Source: Marsupella aquatica (taxonomy: Eukaryota; Plantae; Marchantiophyta). From it: DNA of 64,000 nucleotides. Shown one piece after another: positions 33,985 to 64,000 of this stretch (the stretch's first letter is position 1; each line of letters opens with the position of its first letter). Where the stretch lies: positions 1 to 64,000 of the forward strand of contig OZ316897.1 of the NCBI GenBank assembly GCA_973895155.1. Direction: 5' to 3'. The notes beneath the pieces were generated by a model. The model had not been told where the DNA came from, made no database searches, and worked only from the letters and a program-made list of their open reading frames with translations. The position numbers were made by a program, and so were the translations under genes.

Positions 33985-34705
33985 TACAGGAACGTACCTT
34001 AGTCGATAGCAGGATCGACCCCGGCTTAAGGGCTTCTAAGCCTTCGTGCTGTCCGCCTTCGATCCGGATTCGATGATACAGGTCCTCAACCCGTGCTCGC
34101 AACCACTTACCCGCAGGCTGCACCCTGTGCACGTCTCGGGTAGTGCGTTCGGCCTGGCGCTGCCACCCATATACGGGAAACCCACACACATATGCGCACA
34201 CATGCATACAATCTCGATTTACACGAAGGAAAATGATGGGAAAGGATTTTACTACAAAGGGAACATATGCGTACACTTAGTTGACACGACAGCCCTGGAA
34301 TGCACAGGTTCAAGGCCGAGGGTGCACACTACAACGGAGCCCGGCTCCGCACTCGCCCGGCGAGCTTAGTCCTACCCCCTCCCCTTGGTACTCTGTCATT
34401 CCCAGAGGTCGGGACTCCCCGCATGTCCCACGGATGTCCGACTCTGAAACTAAAAACCCCCCCTGCCTCTACCGAGGGGTGCACTAAATACTAAGAGCTG
34501 AGGAACGGGGTGTCCTCTCGCCGAAGATTCGCTGACTAAGGTCCTAACTAAGCTGACAGTCAGGCCGGAAGACGGCTGTGTCTTATTAGAAGATCCTAAT
34601 CTACGCAGGCTGGACAGCAGGGCAGCGCTGCTGTACCTAAGGCAGGTGCCTGTCCCAAGAGCCTGACTAAGCCAATCCTAATCCTAATCTATTCCTACTC
34701 CGCCG

Positions 34706-37354
34706 CTAATGCCTGGCACGCTTGCCAGAGCCGCCCGAATGGGAACGGCCATCCCGCTGCCTTCGAAGCCTGTCATTGTCCGCTTTGAGGAGCTAGACCT
34801 GGTCCAGCAGAGATTCGTTCTCTCGCCTCGACGCGTCCGTCTCCTCTGCTGCCTCCTGACATGCCTCCTCCAGCTGCTGGGCGTCGCTCGTCAGTTTACT
34901 CGCCAGCTGGTCCTGCTTCTCGGCCTCGGTTTGGAGCCGCGCCATCTCGGCCTGCAGCGTGGCTATCTCCATCGCGTCCCGCTGGGCTCGCTCCTCGGCT
35001 TCCTCCAGGTCTTTCTGCCAGGTGACAGCTTGTTTCTTCAAACTGTCAATCTGGTTCCGGAGTCGTGTAATCTTGGCCTCGTTCCCAGCTTTGGCCTGTT
35101 CGGCTAGGGCGGTAAGAGCGTACGCCTTTGCTAACAACTCATCGGCGGCTGCAACCTTGGGTCATAGTTGCAGAAGCTCAGCCTCTTGAGCCGCCACTTC
35201 ATTCTTTAGGTACACGGACTCCACCCGGTACCGCTCTATCCTCTGAAGGGCCTCCGACTGGGCCCGACCTGCCTTTACGGCGGCAACCAACTCCTGATTG
35301 AAGAAACAGGCTACCTTCCGGGCCATGAACTCCCCGGTATCCCGGGCAATTTGATGAGAGAAATCTCCCAGAAGCCCGTTCAGAAACATACCCTGTACGA
35401 AGAGTTCCGGGTGGTCCAAGTTGTGCCTGTCCGGATTTGGGCACGGGCAGACATCAACACGCGCAGGGGCCGGGGCAGTGACGTCCAGCCCTGGGGACAT
35501 AACGTTGGAAGGGGCTAGAGTGTCCTCCTGCAGCGATGTCCGGTTCTCCGGAATTGCCACCGGCGGGTCCTTGGGAGACCCGGGTTCGGGTAAGACCTCT
35601 GCCGTACCAACTTCTGTACTTAGCCCGGCTAGTTGGGTCGCATCAACGGTTGCGACGACCGACCCCTCCGGCGCCTCCTCGGTTACGATTACAGCTATTT
35701 GTGGAGGTGGGGTGGGTGAAGCTGGCGTGTCCACTGGACTTCGGGCCTCAGGTTGGGGCCGTCTCTCCAATGCCGGAAAAACCCACCTAGCTGGGACCAG
35801 CTTTGTAACGTTGATGCGGGGAAGGGTTCGTCGATCAAACCGGGCGTACCACTCAAGAATGATTTCGATGTGGCTAGCGAAATACGCCTTCCCACCAATG
35901 TACAGCGTCTTCCTTCGCCGCTCCATCTCTTCATGGAATTTCTTAGCGAAGTACGACGTCCATTTCCTAGGTCGATAGTTCTCGACCTGGATAACCTGGG
36001 CGGCGGAGATCTCCCCCCGGGGTTCCATCATGTGGAGAGCGTACCTCTGGAACTCCAGCCGCTCAGCTATCTCGGGCATGAGGCAGGTCCTCATCACGAA
36101 CCCGTTGTCTACTGATCCCTCTGAGGGAAAACTTGAAGATTGGTACTTGGCCCCCTTGCCCCCGGGAGCCCGTGATTCGACTCGATGGTCACCTTCGGGT
36201 AACCCGAAGATCATCTTGAGCCGTTCTTCTGTGAGGGACATATTCCTTCCCCGCAGCCGAGTCTGTTGACGTACGTCGTCATAATTCTTGACGAATTCTG
36301 TCATGTCCTCCCCGTAGTACCTGCAAGTGTTCCAGGGGAGAGAGGCGAGGTGCTCAAATCCCTGAGTCTTCAGGTACACCGCATGCTTGGGATGGAGGAT
36401 GTTGCTGTGAACGTTTTCCCCCATGCGATGCATCGTCACCTTGGCTACGGCTACCGTGGCCAACGGTAACCCGGATGCAGTGGCGGATTCCTTCCTCTTC
36501 TTTCCCTGTGACTGACTCGGGGAAGGTGATACTTCCCCATCCTCCCGATCGGGCCTGGGGAGTGCCACTGCGGTTGGTAACGGGCCCGGGGCGGCCACGG
36601 TCACCATGTTGTCTGCTGGGGCCGCTCCTGGGGTCAGAGCAGGGGGTGGGGACGATATAGTGTCGGCCCCCCGAGCGCTTGTTCCTCTGGGCCGCCTGGT
36701 CAAGGGTGGGGTAGCCTCGTCGTCATCGCTAAGATCCACAGCGTTGATGACGGAGCGTACCTGTGCTGGCTGGGTGATAGGTGGTGGGGTTTGGCTAGGC
36801 TGCGGCTGAGGCCGAGGCTGAGGTTGCATGGGCACGGGTACGGGCACGGGTACGGGTACGGGTACGGGCCCGGCTGAGTTGGTCATGTTGGTTGATGGCC
36901 GAGTTCCCATGAAGCTCTGCAGGTGCTGGTAGAAGTTCTCCGAAGCGAGTGCGGGCGCCCTTGTTGAACGGTTGGTACTGGACTCGCCGTTAATGACAGC
37001 CCGAACCTGGGCAGGGATGTGGTCGAAGTGATGTCGCTGCAGGTCGATTGTACCCGGGATATTGAAGACCTCGTCCGGAAGCCGAAGCAATGCTTCCCAG
37101 AACCCGATATATTTGTCTCCGTTGAAGAAGTACCCAGATACCTCAGCTGGTCGGTAAAGCTCGCTCTGAGAGGGGTAGTCAAAGTTAAGGACGTAGTGGT
37201 GTCGTCCTGCTAGGCGGATGGCTCTCTCGTATTCGCGTTCGATCTCGTATCGGCGTGGGTTGGCGTGTTTCAATGAATCGGCCAAGTGCCTTCCGGTAGA
37301 TAGGAACTGCGTCCAGAATCGAATGGCCGAGCTGGAGAGGATCATGTGCGACAT
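34706..37354 (-). pseudogene. Element-encoded protein of about 880 aa (novel N-terminal domain, Pro-rich linker, transposon accessory-like domain, coiled coil) with two in-frame stops
   Basis: ORFs 35162-37354 and 34793-35137 share one frame that continues to 34706. Core GFEHLASLPW...EFVKNYD...LRGRNMSLTEERLKMIFGLP aligns by eye with element 1. Confidence 0.8.
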
Positions 37355-39250: not shown

Positions 39251-42200
39251 TGTGATGCCTAGACAGGAATCACTCGGCCGGTTAAGTGGGTAAAGCAGGA
39301 AGGCACCCTAGGAACACCTTAGTATAGGGACAAAACAAGGAAAATATAAACAATTAGGGGCAACCATGGAACCCGGGCAGAGGCCGGAGGTAAGGCTGAG
39401 GGTGAAAACCCGATTAGGGTTAGGGCGCGTTAAGCATCGGCGGCTAGGAAGGATCAACGGGAAGAAGGACCGGCAGAGGAGAGGGGTAAGGAGCGCTTGC
39501 AGGAGATGGTGGCTCATTTGCGAGCACGAACTAGGCAGACGACTACGGGAGGCCAACTACTGTCAGCTGCTTAGGCAAGCACTCGGGGAGAGAGTAGATA
39601 CCGACGATCGACCTAAGGAGGGTATGAGCAACGTCAATCAAGCGGCACATTTCTGGGGATGCCTGTTTGAACGGGCAACTGAGTACATCAAGACTTACGA
39701 GGACGAGGAGTCAGAAAGGGCAGCTCGAGAACGGCAGGAGCTCGCTCGATTGTGGGAGCTGCACAAGACGGCTTTCTTAGGAGGCGAACTCATCAAGGAC
39801 GAGTTCCTGTGGACGCCTACTTCCAATCAACTCGACAATCTTCTGTTTTGCAAAGACAGCGTCGTCGGCATCCGAGAGGCCATCAAGAACTGCAACGACA
39901 TACATTGGGAATTAAAGGGTAGCACGGAAAGGTGGACCCAGGCAACGGTGCTAGGAGAAACCTCCACGGCAGCAGAGATGAAGAGGAAGGGGGCCGTCAA
40001 CGATGAAGCCACCCCGGCAAAAAGAACGAGGTCGGCGGCACCAAAGAGGCCAGCCGAGCAGCAGAGCAGGAGGCAGGGAGAAGCCGAAGAGGAGGAGGTC
40101 GATCCCATCAAGGCCATTCCAACCAGGGATGACACCTGGAAGGGCTGGGCGGCAACCCTACCGGTGGAGGTGCAACTACATTTTGCACGGGAGGAGGATG
40201 CATGCTTTACGGCCATGCAGACCAAGAAGTACCAAGGCTTCATGGCCGGATCCGGCTTGGAGGCTTTTGTAAGATTACCATGGCTGAAGCCGGAGGTACC
40301 GGAGTCAGACCTATTAGAATTCGTGGGGTCATGGGAACCCGAGACCAATTGCACGAGGATATATGGGAAGGATTTCTATCTTACTCCCAAGGTAATTGCC
40401 GAAGTGTTTGGCTTGCCGATAGGCAATAAGACCAAAGTTGATACCAGGAAGACCCTGCCTGACAAGGAGTTCCGGTCGTTCCCCGGGCCATCAACGAAGA
40501 ATGGCTTCTTCCGGAACACCTGCACCAACCCGCACATAGGAGAGATGATCGACTTCTTGCGGGTGACCATGCATTGTAACTTGCCGAGGGCAGAGATCGG
40601 CAAGGCACAGGTCTATCTGGCAGAAAGGCCAGACCCAAGCCGGGACTACAACGGGTACCTCCTCAACCAATTGAAGAAGATCTTAAAGGAGGAGCAGCAG
40701 GTAATCGGCATGGGGAGCGTGTCGCGGCTTGGCTATCACATGCCGCTGTTGTGCCGGTATGCCAGAGGTCAGACTTTTGCCCCGGTACTTCCCCTGCAGG
40801 TAAGGGCAAACGAGGAAGCCTCAACCACCTGTTAGTCCTACGATCGAGCAGGTGTTTAGGCCAGGAAGGAAGACTTGCCGATGCAGCAACCAGGCATGCA
40901 GAGTCTGCTGAAACTACTGGAGAAAGAAAAGAAATTGGCATCGGCAACAACAACGGCAACGGCAACAATGCAGGACACTACTACAGAGGTAGGCCTACAC
41001 CGGCTCACAAGAGAAAACCCCTTTGCTGGAGACAAGGAGAGAATCAGGCCGGAATCCAAGCCAGGTGTTCGAATGTACGTGGGAACCTCAAGCTCCGAAT
41101 CTGAGGCAGAATTGCCTGAAGCTCCTACCGACGAAGAGGAGAGGGAGAAGCCGGACGTCCAAGAGGTAGAGGAGGCAGTGGAGGACTGCAGCCATGATCA
41201 TTCCGGCTATGGGTCGGACCATCACGTTCCAGGAGTAAGGACCTGTGGCCGGTTTGTCCCCACACTTCCAAGGGTAGTGCGAGGGGACCCCAACCAGCAG
41301 AGTAGCCCTGAGTCTCCCCCACCAGATGTTGCTCCCCCGAGCTTCGACGGCATAAAACAGACGGTGCAGGAATTTCAGGAGCGAATCAAGCAGGAGGAAG
41401 AGGCCGCCCTGGCTAAGGAAAAGGATTTACCAGGAGGAGATTGGCCGGAGGACATCAGGCGGCTAGCCGAAAAAGGAAGCAAACCTCTAGCCACGATTGA
41501 AGAGATCCGCAGGACGGCTTGGGAGTAGAGGCCACGATGGGCGATGCCGATCACTTCTACTTACTCCACCTATGCTAAGAATAGAGCCATGGAGTATGGT
41601 GAGATGTGTGGGGAACTTGCGCTCGGCATCTTTGGAGAGGAGTTGGAGGTAGGACCCTTTTTCCATAGGGAGCAGTTGGAGAAGCACCAATTAGAAGAAG
41701 CGGTGGCTTTAGAGAGAAGCAAGAAGGACGAGGTCATTCGGCGGCTTAGGAGGATGGAAGCCGAGATTGAAGATCTAAGGGCGGCCAAGAAAGCCCAAGA
41801 TGAACTGCGGATTAAACGACATGAGCTGAACATCATGCAGGGGCAGTTGGACACCGCGCAGGCTGATAATCAGAATATCAAGGATAAACTGACTCAGACG
41901 CAGGAAGAGTTGGCTGACACAATCAAAGAGAGGGAGAAGTGGAAGCAAGAGCTGAAGAATACAGAGGAGGCCCACATAACAGCCAACAGCCGGGCCATGG
42001 CGGAGACCCAAAGAAAGGAATGGGCGTTGAAAGGGGAGCTCGAGAAAATCCGCGGAGCCCTTGAGCAGAAGGAGGTCGAGTTAGGGAAATCCTATCAAGG
42101 GATTATGGCGCTGCAGCAGGAGCTTGCGTCCCTGACGGCCAGCTTCAAGACCGACCTAAGGGAGAAGGACGAGATGCTCGAACAGACTTACGCCAAGATG

Positions 42201-43856
42201 AACCAGATGGAGTCTGTCATCATTGCAGAGCTCGACAAGGAGCTAAGAGCAACCCAGGAGGAGAGGGCTACCTTGAAGAAGGAATTGGAGGAAGCCCATA
42301 GGGAGCAGGAGGAGGCCAAAAACGAGCTGGAGGGGGCACGTAAGGACCTGGATGAAACCCAAGAGGAGTTGGAGGAAATCACGAGGAAGATGGAGAACCT
42401 ACAGCGGCGGGCCGACAACCAAACAGAGCGGCTGAAGAAACAAGCCGCAGTATTTAAATGCTTAGCTGCAGCAGGTCCATCTCCCGTTGGGACAAACCAG
42501 TTACCAGGGGTGGTAATTGCCGAAGGACAAGCCGCGCCAACTGCACCAGTGCCGGAAGTAAGTGGGAAGGGGAAGGGACCAGCTGCCGAGCCACCAACGA
42601 AGAAGAAGCGGAGACCTTCAGGGTCAAGGAGTAATACGACTTCACAGGCCGTGGTGATCAAGGAGGTAGACCCAGCACCGACCCCAGACAGGGTCACGGC
42701 TAAGGATCCAACTACCCTAGGGGAAGGGGAGGCCGAAGCCGAGGGAGTGGCTGAAGCCGAAGCCGTGGGTATTGCCGAGGCCGGTGTCGAGGCTGAAGCC
42801 GAAGGTGGACCCAGTCAGGCCGATGGAGAGTTGACTCAGTCAAGGGCAGGTAATCTGTCAGAGAATGAACCTACGGCAGTGGCTGAGGAGGAAGCGTTGG
42901 GGGCGTCCATTAAGGATCCACCACCGGTGTCGTGACGGTGCAAGGGCGCCGTTCCTTTTAGGGAGGGCGGACGTGGAGGGAGGAGGCGTGAGTGGGCAGG
43001 GCGGGCGCGGATCTCCACGTTTAGGATTAGGATCAGAACCAGGAGCGGCCCTGACACTTAGCTTAGTGGGATTGCGGTCCCACTGGTAGGAGCAACACTT
43101 GTGCTCCTGCCTTGCTGTACATAGGTAGATTCGGGCAAGTAGATTACTGTTAAGTAGATTAGGCTTACGATGCAAAGAATGGCGGATCCACTACCAGGAT
43201 AAGTACCTGGGCAGCGGGGAGCTCAGGGCCTCTTCTTTAGCAAGTTTTTAGTTTGCACCAGCCGGGCTGGGATCAAGTAGTACGAGAAGCTCTCGGTTAG
43301 TCATACAGTGACCCTTGTGTATATTCATGTTTCCTCATGCCTAAGAGCTGAATAGAGTTGGCCTCACGGCTTAGTTCGCAGAACTTGTGTATGAGATGTA
43401 CTGTTTGTATGGCAAGTGCATGGTATGACTCAGTCAGAATGAGTCATTTTGCTATTTGTGTGTCGCATTAACTTGTGTGAAGAGTGCCCACATCAACAGA
43501 AGGAAGGAAAGTAAGCAGGGGAGTGAGAGTTGGATGTGTCGAGCTGAGAGAGGTCTTAGCGGCTTAACCAAGCCTATTGGGGATCATTCTGGCGGCGGAA
43601 TCCAAACATACCTAACAAGACGGAGGGGAAGATAGGGGAAGACAGGGGAAGGCCTATATTAGGCCGGCTACGTATCTCATGACCCGATGAAGGATCTGTC
43701 CAGTATATGTGTGTAAAATGTTAATAGTAGTAGTAGAAAGTTAGCAGCGTCCCATGCCGCTAAGCCGTGGAAACGGCCTCGCCAAGCACGAAACCTGCGG
43801 GAATCGGCTTGAGCTGGGGGGTTTCTTGGGTTTAGGGAGCCATGGGACGCACCACA
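39251..43856 (+). mobile_element. Protein-coding solo-LTR-like element, member 1 (4606 bp) with 5-bp TSD CAATG
   Basis: The empty site GAAGGCCAATGCTTCCCGACC is seen in the other two unit copies. Here it reads CAATG(39246-39250)-TGTGATGC...GCACCACA-CAATG(43857-43861), giving 7/8-bp inverted termini with TG...CA ends. No internal long direct repeats noticed. Confidence 0.92.
39366..42935 (+). pseudogene. Element-encoded protein of about 1100-1190 aa, one frame interrupted by three TAG stops
   Basis: ORFs 39366-40835, 40875-41528 and 41544-42935 are all in one frame, with TAGs at 40833, 40857 and 41526. The homologous start is probably the ATG at 39624 (MSNVNQAAHFW). Core GLEAFVRLPW...EFVGSWEP...IYGKDFYLTPKVIAEVFGLP, then a long coiled coil and an acidic tail. 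Confidence 0.85.
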
Positions 43857-44511: not shown

Positions 44512-45897
44512 AACCGAACAATACCCCGACCCTAACCTGCCTGCCTGCCACAGTGCACTATCTTAACCTTACCTATTATAATGGTTCTACCCTGGATCTA
44601 AACACTCACCAAAGCCCGGCGTGCCAATGAAGCAAAAACTTCGCCGCTTGAAGTAACGAATTCAATCAATTACTGCAGGCGACCTTTAGGCTTACGCTTC
44701 TACCTACTGTATAGCTTGAATGGGTGGGGTTGGCACATCACCGTGTAGAAGTAGGGTAGTTAGTGCCAGTGCCAGTGCCGCTCAACGACAAACACTGAGC
44801 TTGAAGGGTGTGGTGGCCGCATCACCGTGTAGTACTAGGGTACTTAATTATTAGTACAAGCGTCACTCAACAAGAAACACTCAGTCGCATATTCTGCTTG
44901 CAGCATGTCTCTCATACTCAGCTAGTTCAATGCTTTCATCAGGCGACGGGTATGAAACACTGTTCATTCGCACATTTCACTTTTCGGGCTATCAGCCGGC
45001 GAGGCAAGGCGGAGCTCGAGAGACACAATCGCTCTTACCCAGGTTTAGGGTTCAACCATCCTTTGGTTTCATTCTTTATTCACGCTATAACGATGGTGAA
45101 TCAGGCAAGACATTATTGGGGCTGAGTTCTTGAGTACGGGGGTATACTCGTAGCAACATACAAAGAGCAATAGCCAGAGCGAGCGGATGAAGAGAGATCT
45201 CATACAAAAGTTGTGGGAGCTCCTTGAGGTTGCATTCGTCGGCGGGGAATGCATTTCTGTGGATCTTTTATGGTCACCATCGGTTGATGAACTCAACCGC
45301 ATTTGGTTCGAGGGTTTAGGGTTTAGGAGGATCAGTTGTTGTCGGTAAGGCAAGCGATTGATAGGTGTCCAGACAACAGGTGGGTACTACCAGGCTGGAC
45401 GTTGAAGTGGACGCCAAAGGCTATGCTAGGTGAAGGGTCACGGCGAGGAAGCAACTTGGGGAAACAAGCTCTACTGGCAGCAAATGCATGCGGGAAGAAA
45501 CATGGAGAGGCAATCGTTGTGCCACCGACAAAAATAAAGAGGAGTGGAGCAGGTCGGGAGTCAACACGACCGGGACAAAACAGGACACCGACAGTGCCAC
45601 CAATGAGTCTAGGTCAGAATAGTGAGACTGGGGAAGAACCGGGAGGATTTGATGTTGCGGTCACCACATCGACGTCGAAGGATTGGAATTGGAAGGGTTG
45701 GGTTGACACGGGAGCGGAGGAACTTTGACTCAAATTTATTCGGGATGACAACGATGTATTCTGAGTCATAGTTTTGGGCAGGTATCCCAAATTCCTACAC
45801 GGGTTGAGGCTGGAGAAATTTTTCAGGTTACCCTCGACTGCCCAAGATATAACCCACAAAGAGATGATGAAGTTTGTAGCTAATTGGGATCCTGAGC
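44512..45897 (+). mobile_element. Truncated, degenerate member 3 of the same element family
   Basis: From 45093: MVNQARHYWG*...LWELLEVAFVGGECISVDLLWSPS...VRQAIDRCPDNRWVLPG...WKGWVDT...RYPKFLHGLRLEKFFRLP...MKFVANWDPE, matching element 1 (NQAAHFWG, LWELHKTAFLGGE, WKGWAAT, KYQGFMAGSGLEAFVRLPW, LEFVGSWEPE). The left boundary is approximate. Confidence 0.75.
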
Positions 45898-50016: not shown

Positions 50017-50375
50017 CGCCACCCAGAGCTAGAACCAACCCGAAATAGAGACGGTACGTATATAGTGGGACTCAATAGAGCTCGATCTTACTTAGAATAT
50101 CCAGAATCATCTCCACCATTACCTCCCTCTACGTGGCATACCTTATTCAAGCTCCTCTAACCGATCCAGGACTATGACCTTCAAATTTGTCACTTTGAGA
50201 AAGCAGCAACTGGCAATATATAGGTGTTTGCAGCAACTTTGATATCTGTGGGGGCTGATCAGAGAGAAACCAAGTCGGAGCACATTTGTACAAGACCGCG
50301 CGAGGGGGGCGGAGTCTAGACTGGTCACAAGATCGACAACGAATTTCCAGGAGGTAAGTACACCATGTCGCAAAT

Positions 50376-50740
50376 TGTTCATCTTCAAATTCTTCATTGT
50401 TCCCTTCAGCTCTTTGTTGGCCGCTTTCATGGCAGACATAGTCTGCTGAGCATCCTTAATGCCTTCGGTGGCAAAGGAAAATTGCTCTAGACTGAATGTT
50501 TGATTATACATTTGATCCCGCTGCCCTTCAAACATCTTCTTCTGCTTCAGAATGAGCCTTGATGGCCTCTTGTGCGGGAACAGGACTTGTTCGCTTGATC
50601 TGCTCTCGGTATTTGACCAGTTCTACGTCTAATTTCTTGATCTTTTCATAGATATTATCACCCCTTTTATTGATACGCTCGGCCGCCTCCTCCACAGACA
50701 GAAGGAGCTGTTTCCTTCTTTACTCCAAAATGCGCCTCAT
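50376..50740 (-). pseudogene. VPS60: VPS60/CHMP5 (Snf7-family ESCRT-III) 5' fragment, intronless and frameshifted
   Basis: Reconstructed MRRIFGVKKE...SVEEAAERINKRGDNIYEKIKKLDVELVKYREQIKR...MFEGQRDQMYNQTFSLEQFSFATEGIKDAQQTMSAMKAANKELKGTMK. Confidence 0.88.
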
Positions 50741-53700
50741 TGCTAAATTTCCAAATCTACTTCCTCGGCGATGTATTAAGGTTACTGCTGAGTCTAGGAA
50801 CTCAAACAAAGTATGAGGAGAACCAAACTTTCCGCCCCTTGATAGCCTGATGTGCTAAGCTCCTGGAGAGCATCAACGCCAAAAAACTGCCATGAGAATT
50901 ACACACTCCGCTTGACCTGTCCTTTAAACTGCAGAAGAGATTCTTAGCAGATTCATATTTAAGGGCTTCACAGCGGAACGAGAATCCATATCCACAAAAT
51001 TTGGAGCTTGGAGTGTTTCAGAGAGAGTTCCTCAAGGTTACCACGATCACTACGAGGTGAGACTCATTTTTCACAGTCTCAGTTGACCGTAGCTTCAGTA
51101 AAAATTTTGGAAACTAGAACAGGTTTCCTGCATGGCAATTGTGGTGATCAGACTATCCACCCAGGCTTCGTTTACAAGCTTTGGAAGGGACAAAGATACG
51201 ATGAGAATGTTTGGAGTTCTCTCAGAGCAGTCGCGAATTGACTCAAAGTCAGGCACCTGTTTTAACTGACAGATATGGAGGCAACTCTGGGGACGGTGAC
51301 GGTTAAAGTGTAATGCATCAGACTTGCAAGTTCAGGCCTATGGGGATGGTCCTGTCGCTATAAGGCCTTTTGCACATCTTTGAGCCCGCAGCTCTTTATT
51401 AATTAACTTGGGATGGTGAGTTTATGGATCATCTCCCTTCCATTGAATTTCACCTTATTTTCTCCCCGCTACTCCCTTGCTTTCTCCCCATTATTGGGAC
51501 TCCTGCGAGCCTTTTCTTAGTGGCTAGATTCCACGTCTGTGACATGTCTTTACCACATTTGACAAAAATCGGCTAGCTGAAACCCTTTTCCTTAGTGGCG
51601 AAAATTCCCTAGATTCCACCTATGTGACAAGCCTTCACCACATTTGGCGAAAATTGGCTACATCTGAAATCTGAGGTCTCTTCACTCCTTCCCAACTGAA
51701 CCAAATTTTAAAGTCCAACCACACTTTATGACGTCATATCATGAAGCATGGGACTCACCAAAGACATTGTATCAGATACTGTACACCTAATCTGCGCCAC
51801 GCAAGTTTCCAAATGGGAAACTTCGATCACACAAACCAACCAGAAGCCCAAGATGCATACAGTATTTAGCTACAAAGTCTTGATTGAAACCGGCCTTCCT
51901 AGCCTTGATTCAAACCTAGTACACAGATCACCTACGGCAGGGATTTGCGTCATTTTGATGGAGCTCCATGAGCTTAGATCTCAATTCGTTGGCGTGCTCC
52001 ACGTATTGGTTAACAGCTGATTAGCCACTCTCCCCAGTGAATTGTTTTAGACTCTCTTTAGTACGTATGGTTGGGTATACTTGGTACTAATTAATTGTTC
52101 GTCCCAAGTTTGTCTAATTAAGTCAACCCAATCCCTTAGTTTTGCCCTGCAAATTTATAGTAACATGGGCAGGAAGCGCTTGCCGTATATCGGAGATTCA
52201 GTGGATGTTGAGCGCACTGTCTAACATAGGCACTAAAAGTAGTTCTCACATTGAACGGATTTTGGAAAGCTTGACACATGAAATCAAAGGGTCTAATACT
52301 AGGAATGCCGAGAGTGCATGGCTTAAATTACTAGTCTGGTGTTCCTTTCAAGTCCGGTCACTTCGGTTGTTGTGGACTATCAAGTTTGAAGTACAAATAC
52401 GTGGAATACTAGCTTTGCGGAATCAGGGGCCATGCGGTGTTGTGCTCAGACGAAGTCATGTCCCCAGGTGCATAGTATTTGAGCCCGATTTTAAAGTTGA
52501 TTGGTCTAGGTTGCCATGCGTTTGTCATGAAGTCAAGCATGAAGTCAAGCATTGGCCACGCGGAGATGGCTCCTTCCTTGGTGACTTCCAGCAATTCGTA
52601 CTGTTGTTTACTTTTTGTGTCTCGGTTGGTTGGTTCGTCACAACTTACAATGATACCAAGTTCGGACAATTGAATCAGATATTCATTCTGCGATTTGATT
52701 TTTCTTTTCGAACGGAAAAGTATACTCATGAAGGAAAAGTGAATCAACGCTACAGATCGTGTGGTTCATCTTCTCTCCAGTTGGTCTCTCAAAATTATAT
52801 CATGATTCCAGTTACTTTCCTGTACTTGCTACCCACCAATATGATCGTGTCTGATGTGTAATAGCTCGGCGGGTCCAGAGAAGTACTTGTGAATGTACTT
52901 CGTTTCTGGGTGCCAGCCTCCCGGGGCCGGATCAATCCGGTGCCATCGGTCATTCTGGTCCAAGCGGTGTACTTAGACCTGACTTCATCTTGTTAATTAT
53001 TGGTACGAGAGTGTATTGAACTCCATGGCTAAGGACATGCGCTTCATCTTTGAAAGCTGAAGCTTGCTGTATAAAAAGCCCCCTAGCTGAACCACAGAAC
53101 TTTTAGTGTGATATCACCATGATTTACTTCTGTTCTATATAAGACTACATTCAAAACCAAGACAATCTTTTGCCATCTTGAATACCGTCTTTCAATAATA
53201 TTATACACATCGGACTGGATTTGAAATGTGGGTCAATCAAGCATGAAACTGCCAATGGGATTATCTCAATGCTATCAAATACCCCCTCTGAGAGGAACTG
53301 GTGGAGAGATTAGAACAATCAAACGGAATTTGGATACTTAGGAAAGTAGCACTTTAGAAGAATGAAAGTTTATATAGGAAGAGATTTCATCAATCGCATG
53401 ACAGAGACCATAATAAAATCTAGCAGTGTGCTGGCTGAAGGAAGATCAAATCAGGAGTTGGATCCTCTGTTTTGTGGGCAACAGCTGGACCCTGACCTTG
53501 ACCCCGGCCCCATCTAGGAGAAGCAGTTGGAACAATTGGCGTTTTTGAGTGTACGATTAGTTGTTCTACCATAGCAGGATGGATGGGTTGATTCACTACG
53601 AATCCTGATTTGAAACAGGATGAACTTCATCAATAACCTTCAAAGTGCTCTCAGCTGATTGAATTGACAGTCCACGCATCAGTCTTTTGAGGTACACGAG

Positions 53701-53993
53701 AGATTCCGGAGGGGCATGGATTATTTGCAACCAGACACTCAATGCAAGAGCAGAACCTTCAGTAACCACAAGGTCCTCTGTCTCCCCTGTATGGGCTCCA
53801 GCTTGGGCGACGAAAAGTTCCACTCCTGCCCGTGGCCTGTAGATGAAGCCACAAGTTATATATTGAACACTCATTACAAGCACAGAAACACCTGAAACAC
53901 GAAAGTTTTTAAAACATTCATTTGCTTCAGTAATTGAGTCCCTTCCAACCTGCTTTGAAGGACTCCACTTTTTGGAAAATCACAATAATAGTA

Positions 53994-56137
53994 TTCCAAA
54001 ACCGCCCCTGCCAATCTCACAGTCTTTGTTGAATATTGCGTGTGTGCTTGTCATCCAGTCATCCGACTTGGGGTCACTTTTCCGAGTGAACATCACCAAT
54101 TTCCCCATTGCCATCTCAACGGTATTTGGAGATTGAGGATCGCTGTCGACGGTGCAGACATTCGACCTGCGCCTCGTCTGGGTGTACATGTTTAATAGAG
54201 TGACCATAATCACTCCCAAAGCAATAGCCGCTGCAGCCGAAATAGACGTAATAGCCGAGACGCTCAATATAGTCTGACTTCTCTTGCTCTTGAACAGGGG
54301 AGAGAGGCCTCATGGCTGTGCATTCGGGTCGTTTGGATTTATGATGAGTGGGTTGGGAAATGTTGAACACGAGAGGTTGATAGCTGATCCACAGAGCCCC
54401 GTATTCTGGTCAAACGCAGAGGTGTTCGTATGATTCAAGACACCACCAGTGGGTATAGGACCCTGCAATTGATTATGAGAGACGTTTATCGCCTGAAGAT
54501 TTTGCAGTTGGCCCAGATCGTTTGGTATCTCTCCCGTAAAGAAATTGATCGAGAGGTCCAGAAACTCCAGGTTTACGAGCCGGCCTAAATCGTTCGGAAT
54601 CGGTCCTGTCAAATTGTTTTGAGCAATATTCAAGTCTACAAGAGAAGTCGCATTGCCAAGCTCGCCTGGCAAGGAGCCATTGAGAAAATTGCCATTAAGC
54701 CGCAATATTCGAGTTGAAGGAGCGTTTCCTAAGCTGGCGGGAATGGTGCGGATCACATAGTTGTCGCTGAGGTCAAGGACAGCCAGAAAAGGCAGAGAAT
54801 CGAAGTCAATTGGAACATACGACGCTAGCATGTTTTTGGATAAGCTCAAATAGTGGAGGCTGGAGCAGGACGAAAGATTGGGGGGAACAGCACAGGAAAG
54901 GCCATTGTGAGATAGGTCCAGCCACCTGTAGATTTTGACAGCCGCAATTTGAAGAGTAATCGGGAACACCTCCAGTGAAGAAATTGTTGGACAGACGGAT
55001 CACCCGCGGAAGAGTAGTCAGCTTGAGGGGAATGTTCCCAGTGAGGTTATTCCAATTGAGGTCGATGGTCTCCAGCGTCTGCAGGGACCGGAAAGACGAA
55101 GGGATCTGGCCTCCAAATTGGTTCCCAGCCAAATTGAGCGATGTCAAACATATCATGTTGAAGAGCCAAGACGGGATGCTACCGGATAAATAGTTCCAAC
55201 CCAAGTCAAAGTACGGAGAGAAACCTCAAGTTGCCCAGCTGGAGTGGCAGCTCGCCAGAGAAGTGGTTCGAGTTTAGAACGAGTTCCTGCAGGAGCCCAC
55301 AGTTGCCAAGCTCTGAGGGGACTTGCCCTGAAAAGCCATTTCCCTGGAGACTCAGGGAAGTCAGATTGGTCAAGAAACCAACACCCACTGGAATTTGGCT
55401 TGAGAGAGAATTGTAGGAAAGGTCCATAGTTTGCAAACCTGCCAGAGAAAGAATTAGAAGAGAAGTTCAGTTCCTGCAGTTCCAAGCAAGAGCCAACGGA
55501 GAGAGGTATCCGGCCCTTAAGCCGGTTATTAGCCACAGAGATGTACCGCAAGCTCTGGCAATCATTTGAAAAGATCTGCGAAGGGAGTGGTCCCGAGAGA
55601 CCATTATTGGACAGATCAAGGGAGTAGAGGCTTCCAGCATTGCCAAATTCAGACGGTATGGTACCGCTGAGGGCGTTGTGACTAAAGTTCATCGATCCCA
55701 GCTTTGGAATCTGGGCAAGCTCTGGGTTGATGATGCCGGAGAAGTTGTTATAAGCCAAGTTGACACTCTCCAGTTGGTCTAGCTTCAGCAGAGCTCTCCC
55801 GATTGACCCCAATAGAGAGAGTCCTACCAGATTCAACTATGTGACTCTACCACTGCTCGGTCTGCAGAAAACTCCGTTCCACTTGCATGGGTTGGAGTCA
55901 TTGTCATTCAAAGAACTAAGCACCGAGTTGGGATCGCTTGAAAACAAGCAGAGCCATTACATCGTCGCTGATGAGCGGCACTGCCCCTGCGCTTGCCACT
56001 CCGCCAAGAAGTAAATGCACCAGACATGAAACCCATAGCTAGCCTCCAGTCGCTGCCCGGACGTTTTTACAATGCTGTGAAATAGGTGAATACGGAGACC
56101 TCCGAGCAATAGGACGTGATTTCCTCAAGAGCGCCAT
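53994..56137 (-). pseudogene. LRR receptor-like kinase (LRR-VII, IRK/PXC2-like) pseudogene truncated at kinase subdomain I
   Basis: Signal peptide and LRRNT (SDDVMALLVFK...PCKWNGVFC), many LxxLDLSxNxLSGxIP repeats over several frameshifted ORFs, TM segment (SAITSISAAAAIALGVIMVTLLN), then MGKLVMF...FNKDCEIGRGGFG where it stops. Start position approximate. Confidence 0.92.
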
Positions 56138-56375
56138 TTCTGCGTTTGTTGATGACTCTCTCATGATTGGATCAAATGATCCCTCATCAGCTGCAGAATT
56201 GGCAACAAGCTGTTGTGGCGCTGCTCTCCTTTGTACTGCGCGTGGGAAGACCGAAATCTAGCGACATTTTCAAACCATGTATTGTGCAGCCGTTATGAGC
56301 AACTCGCATCCTTTGCTCACAAATTAACTGTCTCCTGTCACGCCCACGGTTTTGCTGCTGAACTCTGCAGTTTCA

Positions 56376-56603
56376 AACATGGAGCTGGGTGAACTGGCTG
56401 CTAACAAGCTTTTCAAGTTGGAACCCGGTAAGGCCTATACATATGTGCTGCTCTCCAATATCTATGCTGCAGCTGGGAAGTGGAAGAAGGTGTCATCTGT
56501 GCGCACTATGATGCAACAGAGAGGTGTTCGGAAGGAGCCTGGACGTAGCTAGATCGAAGTTCATAACAAGATCCATGAATTTGTGGTGGGGGATACACAT
56601 CAA
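56376..56603 (+). pseudogene. PPR E/E+ domain fragment
   Basis: NMELGELAANKLFKLEP...YVLLSNIYAAAGKW...RGVRKEPGRS*IEVHNKIHEFVVGD, with a TAG at the conserved Trp. Confidence 0.9.
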
Positions 56604-57301
56604 ACATGGCAAACATTTAGTAAATCACCGATCTGAGTGGGTTAGGGTTATATAGTATAATAGCCTGAGAAATTGTATGTTTCTACTTAGACGGGCCCAC
56701 ATGACCACTGGACACGAGCTTCACAGAGCACACATGGAATCTGATGTCAGCAAGGCCCTTTTCTATTATAACTAACCTACCGCTAATTGGTCAAGTCCAA
56801 ATTGTGCTAGAATGGAAGAAGACTGATCATAACGCTTGTGCTTTTCAGTGAGTATCGACCCAATTAAACAAGCATCTTTCAAGGAATGAACGAAATCTCT
56901 CAAATGAATCACAACAATGAGTGAGTTGCTGCGATTCTTCTTCCTTCAAAGTCCCTACATATTGCTTTTTGATGTGAAGCTACCACTACCCGACATATGG
57001 ACAGGGGCCCTAAGGCACTTTCTGTCGGCCTCGTTTCCACCAGGCTGCTCCTACTTGGATGTCAATGTCTACCAAGGTGATTGCAGTGGTGATGCCATAG
57101 AACCTAATCTGTCACTCCGAATAATGCTGGCCCAACAAAGCTGAGCTTAGAATAAACAATTGGGCAGCAACAGGCGTTTGATACCCAACGACGATTGGAA
57201 TGGATTGAATGCCTCTCTCCTCTCCTCTCCTCTCCTTGTCTCTGCTGCTGCCTTTTGAGCTGCAATCGGAAGCGCTTCATCTTTCTTCGAGAACTCTGGC
57301 G

Positions 57302-59726
57302 ATAGTTCGCATTTTGACCCGAAGCTGCCCCGACGAGATGTCAAGATCTCTCTGGTTTGAGAGTCGAATGACGGATTGTGAATGAGTGAGTTGACAAAGA
57401 TCCACAAATGATTTTTGACCTGAAACGACTTCACCATCATGTGAGCCTTCCGAATCATAATGAAGTCCTTCCAAAACATCAAACACATTAGTCTTCAGGA
57501 TGTCAAAGTGTTCCCTGAAGAGCTTCTCGGTTTCCTCTTCAAATTTAGTTGCTGCAAACTTCCGAGCAAGTTTGAGCATCTGCCAAACATTATCTACTCC
57601 TAATCGTCGGCAAAGCTCAGCCTCGCAAAACTCAGCGTCGATGATTAATTATTTAGCATCTAGAACAAATTGGAAGGGATATCTAGTGAAGGCCGATCGC
57701 GATGTAGCAGTGATGACAAAACAACGTTGTAGGTCCTGTTTGGAGGCCAATTCAACGACAGTGGTTTGTATCAGCCCATCAAAAGCGGGATAATGATCAG
57801 CGGAGGTCAACTATTTTAGTAAATTTGTAGCAGGTCCTAGTACAGAACCATAGTGCTGAAAGTTGCCCTTTCTTTTCCCGGGGGGACATTTATGACAGGA
57901 CGTGATTGTTTCTCTCACCTAGAGATAGCCGATGGCATCACAATCGCTCTGGTGCTCCAGCCAAGCACAGCTCCTTGTTCCCAGAGCTACTGTCCAGAGT
58001 GCAAACTTACGTCGTGGCAGTCCTAGTGTGAACCAACCTTGATCAGGCCCCAAGAAAGCTGACAGAGCGGCTACATACTGAGGCTTGATTCCAAGCTGTG
58101 CAAATCTTGCACTTATCTGAGCATGCTTTGTCCCAGATGGGAACTCTGCCCTTTGGGTCCGGCCCCGTAGCATCAGCTCGTCCCAGCTGTTTATCGAACT
58201 GTCCCCATTGCCCATTTGATCCGGCACTGTACAGCTGTAGCCCCTTTTCCTCCTTGCCCCCACACTTCCGAATTGCAGCTCGAATGAATGTGCACCGACT
58301 GAGCAGCCAGGTGGATCAAATCAGCTTTAGTATTATGTCAGTCTTTGTCTGTTGTTGCTCCCTTTGGCTCAGCGTCCAAAGCTACTGACTACCTCGGGCT
58401 TGTTTGATAGTAGGTAAGCATGGGGTCGCTGCGAGTTGTTGTACTGTCCTGTATACTTTAGTGGCGCACCTCCTACCGAAGTATCATGTCTTTCCCCTGC
58501 TCAAATTGGCTCAGGTTCTGTACCATAGCATCCGTCTATCATCGGTATCAAGTTCTAATCACATTGGCTTGCTACAACATTACTCCGACAAGTCTCAGTG
58601 ACCCAACAGCATCGCGATCCCTAACTACTCCGCCAAATTTTCCAAAGCTCAGCACAGTATTGACTTTACACGTCACCTCTTAAGCAAACCATTCATTCCT
58701 GTAGACTCAAGCAACCGATGCTCAGAGTCTCATCGCCTTCGCAGATCATTGGGGGGCAACAGACCACCGACAGCACTTGAGAGATAGATAGGATGCATGC
58801 CGACGCTGGAGCCCAATCACCACTGAACAGCCCCGCCTGGCATCACCATTCTCTGGCTCGTGGGGTCCCGCCTTCATTTCTTCATCGTTTTGCTTCTCAT
58901 TGGACTATCGCAGCTTGAGTTTTTCAATTGGGCTTGTTACCAGTCTTGTCGTCTTGAGCTTCATCGAGGAGTCTCTAACACGTGTACAGTCGCTCGTCTG
59001 GTTAGATCGACTTTGTATCAACTGCTGCTGCCAACAGATCCTTGTGGTGAGTTCTCCCTTCTCTATTTCGAATGTATCTTCCCTCCATTCTGTTGTGCCT
59101 CCCCCTAGAGTCCCGTGGGCAGGATAGAGATGGATCCTCCGAGCTTGTATAGGAGCCAAGATTGATGGACAATGGTTTAATTAGCAAAGAGGCGATTTTA
59201 TCGCAGGCGCAAGTATGCAGAGAATGATGTCATTGTCCCGGCGAAGTAACAGAGTTTCTGAACGCAGAGCAAGGTGAAACCAAGGTTACATTGGGTGATG
59301 CCGAGAAGATCATCAATGAGCAGATGGCTCACGAGAATACGATATTGATGAAAGCGAAGCACTCCTTCACGTTGGATGCATTCCTCCAGTACCTTCTCGA
59401 CCCGGTTGTCAACATTGCTTACTTAAACAAGGTGAGACAAAACTAGACGCGTCAATTTTTCCGTTTCTCATGTCTCGAGTAAGGCACAAATTAGAGTGGA
59501 GCCAATCCAGTACTTCACGGTGAATTCTAGCACACTATTGTGGCTGCCGTAGTCGGCAGATCGGTGCAGATTGACTTGTGTGTTCAGACAATGCGTGATT
59601 CTATAAAGCTGTGAAGAGGGTCTATATATGGCGGATCTTTACAGGTACGGATGGCTCATAGGCAGTTTTGTGACTTTCGTGGTCGGAAGCTGCCTTCAAT
59701 CTGTCCCCGAGATAAGGCTGGGAAAT
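57302..59726 (+). repeat. Segmental duplication, block C copy 2
   Basis: Colinear with 21476-24535. Confidence 0.93.
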
Positions 59727-60261
59727 GCTTGCCATCAGGGGAAACTAGGTTCTCATTGTGTGTAAATTAAGGCTTCAAGAAAAAATGACTAGTGTCCAAT
59801 AGAACTATAAGCTTATTGTTTAATAGGCCCCAAGTCCGTCCTGAAAAAGAGACGCGAGATTCTCCAGAAACCGACAACACTCTTGAGGGCTATAGTTCAA
59901 TTTTTATTGATCATTGATCTGAGGTTTGGTCCTTCTTCTAGATTGCAGGATGTTGTGTATCTATAGTGAGAAATAACTATATCTCGTCATTGAGTTTGAT
60001 GACCTGGACTTCAAGAGGCATGGACTTCTCCCCACTTTTGAAATTAGATTCTGGTGGGTGCAATAGGTCCAATTTATATGTGTGGTGCAACGTTACATTG
60101 AAAAACCTCAATTGGTGCTTCTACTGCTAGAGCAAGGTTGAGGTGAGTCGGGGAGTTGGAGTTTGTATCTAATCTTTGCAATTCATATTTCAATGAGATC
60201 TGTGCAGACACATCCACCGTGTATTTTTTTCTAAAAGTTGTATTCTTCAAAAATCCAAAAA

Positions 60262-61900
60262 ATGACATTTCCACAACCCACTCAAGTAAGTAACATAATT
60301 TCTATTTTTTTCAATCATTTTTTTGAAAATTATTAATATAATAGACATTGTGGATTTAAGTGATTAAAAAATATTATATTATTACAATTTTATATTAATT
60401 TTTAATCAAAATTACTATTGGTAATAAATATTTACTATATTTAATAGTGTAACAGTTTTATTTAAAAAGTTTGGAAAAAAATTTGATTAGTACTGACACA
60501 AAATGAAATTGACAATTTTGCAGATGCTCCATAAACGAAGGGAGAGGAGAAAAAATCAAAATAAATTTCATGAATATGGAGCCGAATTTTCTATCATAAC
60601 ATTTTGTTCAATATGGGATTATCTAAGCAAATTATGTGAATCTAAACAACAATTTATTTTATATTGGATTTTAAAAAATGAAAATATTTTTGTATATTTT
60701 GTTACACACATTTTACAAATAAATGTGTCCAATTTTTCAAGAGCTAAATTTTTGAATGGGTATAACAACTGCAGAAGTGCAATTCCACCAATTCTCCCTC
60801 TTCAAACACTTCAACAAACCGAGAAAATCTTTCATCATCATCAACAGAGACAAAAATTGCCTCCACTATTGAAAAAATTCATGGGAAAATTTCACATCCT
60901 TAACCTATCCCAACTCCGTACCTTACAAGTAGAGAGGGTAGCTTCTTGTAAAGTTGACAATACATTCTCTTCAACACAAGTAGAAGTGCAACAAATATCA
61001 AAATCACAACTGAAAAAATTGACTGGAGTGATAATGGGAAATTGGAAGGAAGACATGACTAAAACCAATCATAGTAATCCTACATTCACATTTGAGCGTT
61101 ATCCATCAAATTTTCTAGTGATAGAGAAATCTGAAAATATTGTTTACTTTTACGACAAGTCAGGGAAAAAGCCTTGGCTTGTAGCAATGCTCATGCACCA
61201 ACAAATATTGGGAGTGACAACATTACAATTCATTCGAAAACTTTTGAGTGCATTGTTTGTTGCTCATTCTCCATTTCAAAGAGGCGAGGGGAAAAAAGCT
61301 TTTGACAGCTTCATGACAGGATATGGTCCTTGGAATAGCAGTTACATGGGTGGCCGTTTGACTTATTACACACACCAGAAGAAGATGAATACCATTTTCA
61401 ATGATTGCCTTGATGTCAAAGATTTTGAGAAGTGGATCGATAAATATTCACATATTGAACTTATGGATATTATATTGGGCCTTTATATGTGGTGGTGCCC
61501 AGAGATGATAGAGTGTTTTTTGGAATACTCTCATCCGTACTTACTATCATGTGATCGTGACAAACATCATGGAAGTGAAGAGCAAATAGGGGAGAATGTT
61601 AGACCTAGTACTTACCAATTATATATAAGTGAGGATTATTGTGTGCAAACACATGCTGATGATGATGCAACTGACTTCACCTTAGCGTATGCTAGTCATC
61701 CTGACCATTTCCTTTCAGCAATCGATTTTGTAATTCCAGAGTATGGAATTAGATTGCCAATTAGAGATGGAAATCTATTTGCATTTCGGAGCGATGTAGT
61801 TCATGGTACAGGCTTTAGGATGAAAACATCGAATCCTGCATATGTTGGAGCTATTACCGTAAATAAAAACCTCAGCAGACTGATGCAAAAATTACATTAA
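60262..61900 (+). CDS. TET/JBP-like (Tet-like) Fe(II) dioxygenase, about 466 aa; predicted exon 1 60262-60285, intron 60286-60523, exon 2 60524-61900
   Basis: Intact ORF 60503-61900. The C-terminal DSBH reads FMTGYG...GGRLTYY...YQLYISEDYCVQTHADDD (HxD at 61652-61660)...FVIPEYGIRLPIRDGNLFAFRSDVVHGT (distal His 61802-61804). Upstream ATG 60262, donor CAA|GTAAGT, branch-like TACTGAC (60491) and acceptor TTTTGCAG|ATG are in phase 0. Confidence 0.75.
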
Positions 61901-62811
61901 AATTATTGTGTAGATGTGCTCTCCCGGGGCAAGCTGAGAGCGCTTGGAGGGGCTACTCAAAGTGGTGAGTGCTCGTAGGGTGGAGATGACACCATGGTCA
62001 TTTTGGATTTAGCCTGGTCATCATTATATTTGGTATTGAAATTCAGATTCTGACGTCATTTTAGCGATTCTTTCAAGAAGAGTAAGGGTTGGCATAATCT
62101 CGTTGAAAAATGGAATGTTGTCATCATGACTTTGCAATATTGGGCAAGTTGAGGTGTGAAAGGTAAGGCATGTTACTTGTTATGGGGGTGATATATTGAA
62201 ATGGGGAGGTTTTGCAAGATAGAAGAACTCAAATAAATCAACTCAAAGGTGGAATTGATATGATCAGCACACGTACCCTTGAGAGTAACAAACACTTTGA
62301 TGATGAGGCACCAACCACAAGTTGAAAACCCCAAAGGACAAGGGTGGGTGTGGATGTCCGGAAAATGGTCTTATTCTTGTGGGGTTAGTGGTATGCATTT
62401 TATTGTATGACTTTGTAGAAGAAACATACAGGCAACTTCACCTTGTTTAGTAAATCACCCTTATACTCATTGGGCTCGTTACTTGCTTCCCATGGGCTGA
62501 AGATACAACTGTAGAGATTCTAGGTGGGCATCCAAACTCATCAAGGGCATAGTTACACTTGATTTGCGTGAACACCTCCAGTCATCAAATTATTGAATGT
62601 TGTCCAAACTAATCTTCTAAGCCATTTTGGTTTGCCATGACACAACCCATGCAGACCATTGAAATAAGCACATGTCAAACTGATTTTTTTGAATACCCTG
62701 TCTGATTCTTGTAGGCCCGCTTGTAGATCCATTACAAGGAGTCAGAGTGAATTGCAGAATTGGCCATTGTTTGTAACGGGTCTGGAAGGCTTGACAAGGT
62801 TAGTACATCTT

Positions 62812-63450
62812 AACACTTGCATTTTATGATTGACATGAGGGCATTCCAGCACTCATGTTGCAAGGCAGGGGGCTGTTTCACCTGGATTCAATTATGATAA
62901 GAATTACATATAAAAGTAGAAAGGAAGAATTAAATTCACATCCTTTATTGCCTCCTATTATTTTCACCTTCCCATGTACTTGTTTCGTCTATGGTATCAC
63001 ATTGTTTCTGGGGGCGGTGGTGGTTGGAAAAGGTTGGCACATTTTGACACTTGCATTTAACAATTGAGATAAGGGCATTCCGGCACTCATGTTGCAAGGC
63101 AGGGGGCTGTTTGACCCGGAGTCAATCATACAAAAATTATATATAAAAGTAGAAAAAAAAACCAAATTCACATCCTACATTTCCTCCTACTGTTTTCCCT
63201 CTCCTGCTTGTTTCTATTAAGGTATCATATTATTTCTAAAGAAGGAGGGGGGCAGCTCAAAAATGTTAATATATCTTGACACTTACATTTAATGATTGAG
63301 ATGAGGGCATTCCGGCACTCATGTTGCAAGGCAGGGGGCTGTTTGACCCGGACTCAATCATACAAGAATTACATATAAAAGTAGAAAAGAAAAACCAAAT
63401 TCACATTCTACATTTCCTCCTACTATTTTCGCTTTCTTACATATTTCTAT
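62812..63450 (+). repeat. Tandem repeat of about 233 bp, about 2.7 copies
   Basis: GGGCATTCC(A/G)GCACTCATGTTGCAAGGCAGGGGGCTGTTT at about 62839, 63073 and 63305. Confidence 0.9.
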
Positions 63451-64000
63451 TATAGTTGTAGTTTGCCAGAGAGAACCAAAAGCACACTTTTATGTCTCTA
63501 AACTTTTATGAACCCTAAAGTTCCACTGACCATTTGTCTTATGAATCTATACAACACAGCGGAGTTATATGAATTCACATGGTCCGAGAATTCCCAAGAT
63601 TACAGGGATTTATGAAAATATACATTTTGACTGGGATGACAAAGATTTAGAGTAAAGATCTCTTTATTTTCACACAAAGTGCATTTTGGAATGACATGGG
63701 AGTTTGAAAGTTTAGATGGATATCCTCTACGAATGCATGATTCTTTCAACATCCCATCCGAGCTTACGACTCTTTTTGGTCTTTCTCCGTGGTTTAAAAA
63801 GCAAAAGCCAACGCCCGCTGAATGGCTCCCTTTTTGCTAAAAGGCATTAAAACAGAAGCTCAATTTAGTCAATTGACACATTAGCTGTCCGCTATAAAGT
63901 TGGATTGCACGACATCACAAGTGACGTGTTTACCATGTTTTGGGAGCTACTCCTTCGCAGTAGCTGTCACCTTCTCCCAAGCCTGGTGGGTTGTGTTGTT

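Follow-up and report, generated by a model that had tools for sequence, protein, structure and literature searches.

The window analysed here comprises the first 64,000 nucleotides of contig OZ316897.1 of the liverwort Marsupella aquatica (assembly GCA_973895155.1). Its first 1,983 nt are an array of CCCTAAA, the repeat typical of plant telomeres, and approximately 58 kb inward from this array lies an intact gene whose predicted product resembles the TET/JBP dioxygenases. An earlier examination of the letters alone, referred to below as the sequence-only reading, had proposed an intact TET/JBP-like DNA base-modifying dioxygenase at this position. Residues are numbered from the ATG at 60503, the first ATG of a forward-strand frame (60503-61900) with 465 codons before its stop. 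The longest stretch without a stop between 60000 and 62000 spans 467 codons; when this 2-kb sequence was shuffled 500 times, the longest such stretch averaged 82 codons and never exceeded 151. The open frame that had been described is thereby confirmed. The frame had also been called the only long uninterrupted open reading frame (ORF) with enzyme motifs in the window. It is long and intact, but it is not the only long one; frames of 730, 489 and 463 codons are present as well.

The gene appears to be interrupted by a single intron near its 5' end. A possible first exon, or part of the 5' untranslated region (UTR), lies at 60262-60285 (forward strand) and comprises eight codons in all, beginning with an ATG (MTFPQPTQ); a perfect splice donor, GTAAGT, comes directly after it at 60286. 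The intron itself (60286-60523, forward strand) is 238 nt long, of the GT..AG type and in phase 0, with a CTGAC branch-like site approximately 27 nt upstream of its AG and an acceptor, TTTTGCAG, that ends at 60523; an in-frame ATG comes next at 60524. Its G+C content is 16%, versus 35% in exon 2. The clean phase-0 intron of the sequence-only reading is therefore well formed. The main coding exon (60524-61900, forward strand) contains 458 codons plus the stop, and the sequences of relatives likewise open with this Met and a run of basic residues. In relatives P0001 and P0033, from homologue ORFs that were called prokaryote-style, the conserved Met is preceded by F-V-F-Q-M and F-V-Y-F-Q-M, respectively. 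Because this is the translation expected of a pyrimidine tract plus CAG|ATG, the intron position seems to be conserved between the gene and these two relatives. The integrity of the protein does not depend on whether the eight codons of the possible first exon are translated or belong to the 5' UTR. All searches described here used the contiguous frame 60503-61897 or exon 2, rather than the joined product of exons 1 and 2.

The motifs on which the first identification was based are all present where they had been placed. These are T383-H-A-D-D-D388 (His codon at 61652-61654), F409-V-I-P-E-Y-G415, the HGT that begins at H434, the segment M271-T-G-Y...G284-G-R-L-T-Y-Y290 upstream of the HxD, and the strand A446-Y-V-G-A-I-T-V-N-K455, which starts at 61838.

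The predicted fold provides the main evidence for the identity of the protein. An AlphaFold2 model built from a 36-sequence alignment had a predicted local distance difference test score (pLDDT) of 86.6 and a predicted template modelling score (pTM) of 0.89. The leading Foldseek matches were CcTet (1e-8), CMD1 (4e-8) and TET2 (9e-8), with FTO next at 2e-6. A search independent of Foldseek, against 48,161 representative chains, returned the four solved TET/JBP types at ranks 1 to 4: TET2 (Z 17.5, root-mean-square deviation (rmsd) 3.9, 256 residues aligned), CMD1 (Z 16.5, 257 residues), NgTET1 (Z 14.8, 223 residues) and CcTet (Z 14.4, 252 residues). The next match was ALKBH3 (Z 12.2, 174 residues), and the best AlkB-type structures, at Z 12.2-12.4 over 174-183 residues, fell under all TET/JBP structures. 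A second structural comparison agreed with this ranking. The TET/JBP-type catalytic region comprises residues 144-465 (60932-61897, forward strand) and aligned to the four types at Z 14.4-17.6 over 222-268 residues. The TET/JBP matches extend back to residue 131-150 and take in an N-terminal extension ahead of the beta-helix core; AlkB enzymes are without such an extension. According to this model, the window protein is a very divergent TET/JBP-fold enzyme. Structure prediction had been suggested as a check on the first identification, with placement outside TET/JBP as the adverse result; such a placement did not occur, and the top matches were TET2, CMD1, NgTET1 and CcTet.

The H-x-D...H iron triad is conserved and is predicted to form an intact metal site. 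The proximal ligands, H384-A-D386, are encoded at 61652-61660 (forward strand); H384 is found in at least 90% of 16 clade members, and H384 and D386 are invariant in the four closest sequences. The distal ligand, H434 of H434-G-T with its following Thr, is encoded at 61802-61810 (forward strand), and H434 is nearly invariant (at least 90% of the 16 clade members) and fully so in close relatives. A profile of the C-terminal 115 residues had a sole match in the whole Protein Data Bank (PDB), namely CMD1 (E 0.019), with both iron motifs aligned: H384 and D386 with H345 and D347 of CMD1, and H434-G-T with H397-G-T399. The predicted fold, with the four TET/JBP types at ranks 1 to 4, and the intact iron site together bear out the TET/JBP identity that had been proposed.

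The co-substrate site, as read from the sequence, departs from that of known members of the superfamily. Residues were mapped onto known enzymes by alignment register and not by superposition in three dimensions. In canonical TETs the last strand has the pattern R-x-S....[FY].[HR] (PMC7854593, PMC11040006), and its Arg (R1896 in TET2, R289 in NgTET1 and R385 in CcTet) holds the distal carboxylate of 2-oxoglutarate (PMC7854593, PMC11040006). The corresponding strand of the window protein is A446-Y-V-G-A-I-T-V-N454 (61838-61864, forward strand). Relatives from chytrid fungi have an invariant R-[YIF]-T in the same columns, and hhalign of the Arg-less clade with the chytrid clade pairs A446 with the Arg, Y447 with the Tyr and V448 with the Thr. 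Three MAFFT alignments place A446 in the same register. None of 20 clade sequences has an Arg in the A446 column; A, V, T or S is found instead. The His or Arg that stands eight residues after the last-strand Arg is replaced in the window protein by an invariant N454. The earlier observation that the last strand has no Arg is thus upheld in the three MAFFT alignments and in the profile-profile comparison, by register and not by coordinates.

In known enzymes a second Arg (TET2 R1261, NgTET1 R224, CMD1 R244, CcTet R205) touches the co-substrate and also packs against the flipped base. A candidate for this residue in the window protein is R260, which lies in a Q-R-G sequence, is invariant in close relatives and is Arg or Lys in most family members. 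In addition, R439, five residues after H434, is found in most of the clade. It may be speculated from these patterns that R439, Y447 and R260 are candidate substitutes for the missing co-substrate binder. A far branch of metagenome sequences (P0063, P0064, P0066 and P0067) has Ala-Tyr on the last strand and a conserved Lys-Thr six residues later, which may be an alternative way to hold the co-substrate. Two chytrid proteins, P0058 (L005, 10001-11038, Geranomyces variabilis) and P0070, have H-V-A-D in place of H-x-D; these copies may have their acidic iron ligand displaced by one position, or they may be inactive.

The protein belongs to a family that is small, very divergent and unannotated; it scores under every curated threshold, is found in a new host lineage, lacks the co-substrate Arg and carries an N-terminal domain of its own. 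A word-based homologue search of 5.8 billion clustered proteins found three relatives, and a profile of distant members in the same type of search found no further ones. When 1.84 billion representative proteins were searched exhaustively with a hidden Markov model (HMM), only 65 relatives came up, mostly fragments, 13 of them at E<=1e-30; H384, D388 and H434 are common to these relatives. The sequence-only reading had suggested an HMM comparison with the Tet_JBP and Tet-like 2OG-FeII families. The window protein gives nothing in such a comparison: a Pfam scan at E<=10 had no match, including to Tet_JBP (PF12851) and PF20515. Only distant relatives gave sub-threshold matches, namely P0047 to PF20515, 'Tet-like 2OG-Fe(II) oxygenase' (E 0.002, 18.6 bits, under the 27-bit cut-off), and P0066 and P0025 to PF12851 (E 0.011 and 0.13, respectively). 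An ESM feature search led to fungal clusters with PF20515 and one viral cluster with PF12851, and tblastn of P0066 against 50,697 phage records found no match. A phmmer search of the protein against PDB sequences also returned no match. A whole-family profile against the PDB matched only USP16 (E 1.7e-4), on a helical stretch; this was judged spurious, as it is unrelated to the fold result.

The only named relatives are hypothetical proteins of the chytrids G. variabilis and Geranomyces michiganensis (P0058, P0068-P0070). The homology is secure, with an HMM E of 9.6e-6 and a strong hhalign match (probability 99%, E 3.8e-18, 215 columns). A chytrid protein used as query returned only Geranomyces kin, none with a Pfam domain, and a chytrid-clade profile against the PDB gave nothing meaningful. 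Together with two unplaced sequences, these chytrid proteins are the most distant eukaryotic relatives. A core-region tree gives good support (98/95) to the chytrid clade that retains the Arg and leaves the Arg-less sequences as an unresolved comb. The family can be described as an Arg-less clade that includes the window gene and a sister-like Arg-x-Thr clade in chytrid fungi. Horizontal acquisition, which the sequence-only reading had raised, is possible given that the nearest named kin are chytrid fungi, and the tree leaves this question undecided.

The N-terminal region sets the window protein apart from the chytrid sequences. The first residues after the conserved Met form a basic stretch, MLHKRRERRKNQNK (60524-60565, forward strand), which as a motif looks like a nuclear localisation signal. 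A KRRERRK-type N-terminus also occurs in relatives; a KRKR start is also found in P0012, P0029 and P0033, and P0012 and P0029 begin MGKRKR. Residues 27-152 (60581-60958, forward strand) form a family-specific all-helical domain with seven helices, which modelled alone had a pLDDT of 84.1. The best match of this domain among the 48,161 chains was at Z 5.7, the noise level for helical proteins, and the domain gave no Pfam match and no ESM lead. The chytrid relatives are without the helical domain, and their hhalign match spans residues 216-463 only.

Comparison with characterised enzymes shows where the window protein follows the superfamily and where it departs from it. The human TET2 catalytic domain (PDB 4NM6, 5D9Y and 9HXV) is the best structural match, at Z 17.5-17.6 and an rmsd of approximately 4.0 A over 256-260 residues of the model (144-465). 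It shares the H-x-D...H iron triad, but the two proteins are just 12-15% identical, and the window protein has its own N-terminal helical domain and is without the Cys-rich domain and the large insert of TET2. In the alignment register, R1896-x-S1898 of TET2 becomes A446-Y-V, Y1902 becomes T452, H1904 becomes N454, and N1387 becomes A389, with D388 adjacent.

CMD1, the vitamin-C-dependent 5-methylcytosine (5mC) glyceryl-transferase of Chlamydomonas (PDB 7CY4-7CY8), is the second structural match (Z 16.5-17.1, 257-267 residues). Like the window protein it comes from the green lineage, and its canonical C5-carboxylate clamp is non-functional (PMC7854593). The aligned R410 is present in CMD1 but faces away from the site, which is occupied by Trp358; this arrangement is given as the reason CMD1 cannot use 2-oxoglutarate (PMC7854593). 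The statement in the sequence-only reading that CMD1 lacks 2-oxoglutarate-binding residues is thus imprecise, since both aligned Arg residues are kept (PMC7854593). Vitamin C is contacted in CMD1 by R244, H249, T337, W358 and T399 (PMC7854593). In the marginal alignment (E 0.019), T399 and T337 align with T436 (the Thr that follows H-G) and S376 (on the first core strand) of the window protein, and the Trp358 column is Ala397. CMD1 differs further in that its Arg410 has no counterpart here and in that it retains the stacking Phe416 and Asp350.

CcTet, the bifunctional 5mC and N6-methyladenine (6mA) dioxygenase of Coprinopsis (PDB 7VPN, 7W5P and 8JKK), was the top Foldseek match (E 1e-8) and aligned at Z 14.4-15.0 over 252-268 residues, back to residue 131. 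Both proteins have a small residue five positions after the first His, Gly331 in CcTet and Ala389 in the window protein; Gly331 lets CcTet accept 6mA (PMC11040006). Unlike the window protein, CcTet keeps Arg385, Phe391 and Arg393 on its last strand (PMC11040006). The Geranomyces proteins (P0058, P0068-P0070) share the core motifs, but have the invariant Arg-x-Thr and no N-terminal helical domain. Many of the fungal PF20515 Tet-like proteins are transposon-borne, whereas no transposon was seen at the window locus.

The surroundings of the gene have been shaped by large duplications. A 9.4-kb segment (1984-11347) recurs at 24575-33990 with 99% identity. Its first copy begins immediately after the terminal telomere repeats, whereas none precede the second. 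Each copy contains a decayed 5' fragment of a paralogous TET-like gene, approximately 70 codons long with an internal stop (6567-6776 and 29162-29371, both on the forward strand). By tblastn, this fragment shares 66% identity with P0012 and 39% with the window protein (residues 30-100). Tandem arrays with a spacing of approximately 167 bp directly follow each fragment (6796-7283 and 29391-29802). Just upstream of the intact gene, a 2.3-kb repeat block (57302-59561) recurs at 21476-24409 with 91-96% identity in a self-comparison of the window, and downstream of the gene there is a 232-bp tandem array (62796-63452, 2.8 copies). Interstitial (TTTAGGG)2 units, in the orientation opposite to the terminal array, are located at 4044-4057, 4433-4446, 26635-26648, 27024-27037 and 45315-45328, four of the five within the duplicated blocks.

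Other content of the window includes the three long frames mentioned above, 35162-37354 (reverse strand), 39366-40835 and 41544-42935 (both forward strand), of 730, 489 and 463 codons, respectively. They lie in a G+C-rich stretch (53-58%) and gave no significant Pfam match, only a weak coiled-coil-like match to ATG16. On the reverse strand at 54313-55836, a plant-type leucine-rich repeat (LRR) receptor ectodomain is split over at least two frames and is probably a broken receptor-like kinase (LRR-RLK) or receptor-like protein (RLP) gene; its ORFs have what we take to be the 24-residue LRR pattern specific to plants and the '...GN..LCG' with which such receptor ectodomains end. An exon-sized ORF at 19904-20362 (reverse strand) strongly matches the SMC N-terminal ATPase (E 1e-30), and a fragment at 50146-50535 (reverse strand) matches Snf7/ESCRT-III (E 3e-10). 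An Rfam search of the whole window returned nothing. A contaminant origin of the gene is unlikely, because the gene is embedded in repeats of its own genome, on a contig with a plant telomere array and plant-type LRR fragments.

It is very probable that this is a real, selected gene of the TET/JBP fold, although several results weigh against a conventional enzyme of this kind. By alignment register, the position of the co-substrate Arg is A446; the base-stacking aromatic residue six after that Arg (TET2 Y1902, NgTET1 F295, CMD1 F416, CcTet F391) is T452; and the Asn or Asp that contacts N4 of cytosine, five residues after the first His, is A389, a variable small residue next to the invariant D388, where a one-residue loop shift in the register is possible. 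In addition, no curated family reaches threshold for the window protein, and many database relatives are fragmentary or look decayed, such as P0016, in which HGT is changed to HCR and the last strand has an insertion, and P0010, which has an unrelated tail. Such broken relatives, together with the two decayed paralogue fragments in the window, would be expected if the gene were intact by chance or recently silenced, as one more decaying copy, not expressed and without present function, in a subtelomeric family that is dying out. This explanation is unlikely. It would have to accommodate 465 stop-free codons in DNA of 34% G+C, and also the conservation of catalytic and many structural residues among proteins that are just 20-40% identical, which indicates long purifying selection on at least some copies. 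The altered base-contact residues could instead be taken to mean that the protein is another double-stranded beta-helix oxygenase, such as an AlkB- or FTO-like repair enzyme or RNA demethylase, or a protein hydroxylase, and that the likeness to TET is a general similarity of fold. AlkB-family and prolyl-hydroxylase structures do align at Z 10-12, and FTO is among the Foldseek matches (2e-6). The four TET/JBP types nevertheless outrank all other families by 2 to 5 Z and by 50-90 more aligned residues, and their alignments reach into the TET-type extension at residue 131-150. With CMD1 as the only sequence match in the PDB, and Pfam and ESM hints that all point to Tet-type families, membership in a different oxygenase family seems very unlikely.

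A further explanation concerns whom the enzyme serves rather than what it is. Fungal TET/JBP genes are often borne on DNA transposons (PMC12730594), and the sequence-only reading had considered the gene to be mobile and possibly an anti-silencing factor. If the gene were cargo of a large mobile element, such as a DNA transposon of the TET-carrying kind known from fungi, it would act on behalf of this element, for instance against silencing, and the paralogue 5' fragments in the window do show that such pieces get moved. Against this, no inverted repeats were found in 52000-64000 and no terminal repeats next to the gene, and neither a transposase-like ORF, a KDZ- or Plavaka-like gene nor a relevant Pfam match was found within approximately 4 kb upstream or the 2 kb downstream that reach the window end. 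The duplications that are observed involve large, near-identical subtelomeric blocks, so the visible spread is by segmental duplication. Moreover, the chytrid relative P0058 lies among housekeeping genes, between a BolA and a kinesin gene. A role as transposon cargo is therefore improbable, and the mobile-element idea finds no counterpart at this locus.

Taken as a selected gene of the TET/JBP fold, the locus probably encodes a predicted, likely nuclear Fe(II)-dependent dioxygenase of approximately 458-466 residues that belongs to a small, divergent family within the TET/JBP structural superfamily. To our knowledge, all characterised members of this fold group act on a flipped-out base. By analogy with TET2, NgTET1, CcTet and CMD1, the enzyme would flip a base from the DNA duplex into its iron site, where the methyl group of that base would be oxidised or otherwise modified. 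The likeliest target of the enzyme would be 5mC in methylated subtelomeric chromatin, which is placed first in view of the chromatin context and of CMD1 as a precedent from the green lineage. The substrate may differ from 5mC, and is possibly not DNA, because the positions of the canonical TET residues are changed at A446, T452 and A389; these changed contacts leave 6mA, T or RNA open as substrates. On balance, an action on nucleic-acid bases is only slightly favoured. Because the last-strand Arg-x-Ser/Thr clamp is Ala-Tyr-Val, the co-substrate would be held in a non-canonical manner. Either 2-oxoglutarate would be bound by other residues, with R439, Y447 and R260 as candidates, or another co-substrate would be used; the latter is conceivable but doubtful. 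The gene itself would belong to a subtelomeric multigene family whose copies multiply through segmental duplication and not through any transposon that could be identified. A combination of all these features, in which a land-plant subtelomeric TET-fold family without the 2-oxoglutarate clamp uses an alternative co-substrate, comparable to vitamin C in CMD1, and writes a base modification new to land plants, is a rather unlikely outcome.

Plants are generally taken to remove 5mC with DME/ROS1 glycosylases. The sequence-only reading had contrasted the gene with flowering plants, which use these glycosylases and are without TET; this contrast loses its relevance with a liverwort as host. TET/JBP-type enzymes are not an established kind in land plants. 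In the literature covered, no paper was found to link TET/JBP with Physcomitrella, Marchantia, bryophytes or liverworts, although an earlier mention in the TET/JBP surveys of Iyer et al. is possible. The existence of plant TET equivalents is considered an open and disputed question (PMC6949463). A review that describes plant demethylation as glycosylase-based also raises the question of whether there are more TET_JBP proteins, with different cofactors and substrates (PMC11065753). The gene family described here is a concrete, clonable candidate for both questions, and combines a TET fold in a plant genome, an intact predicted iron site, a rebuilt co-substrate pocket and a location in methylated, repeat-rich chromosome ends. 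If the enzyme is inactive or not expressed, it is still a clear case of a gene family missed entirely by curated protein databases. An active enzyme would extend the biology of plant DNA methylation by an oxidative or adduct-forming branch, and may provide new enzyme chemistry for base-resolution sequencing tools.

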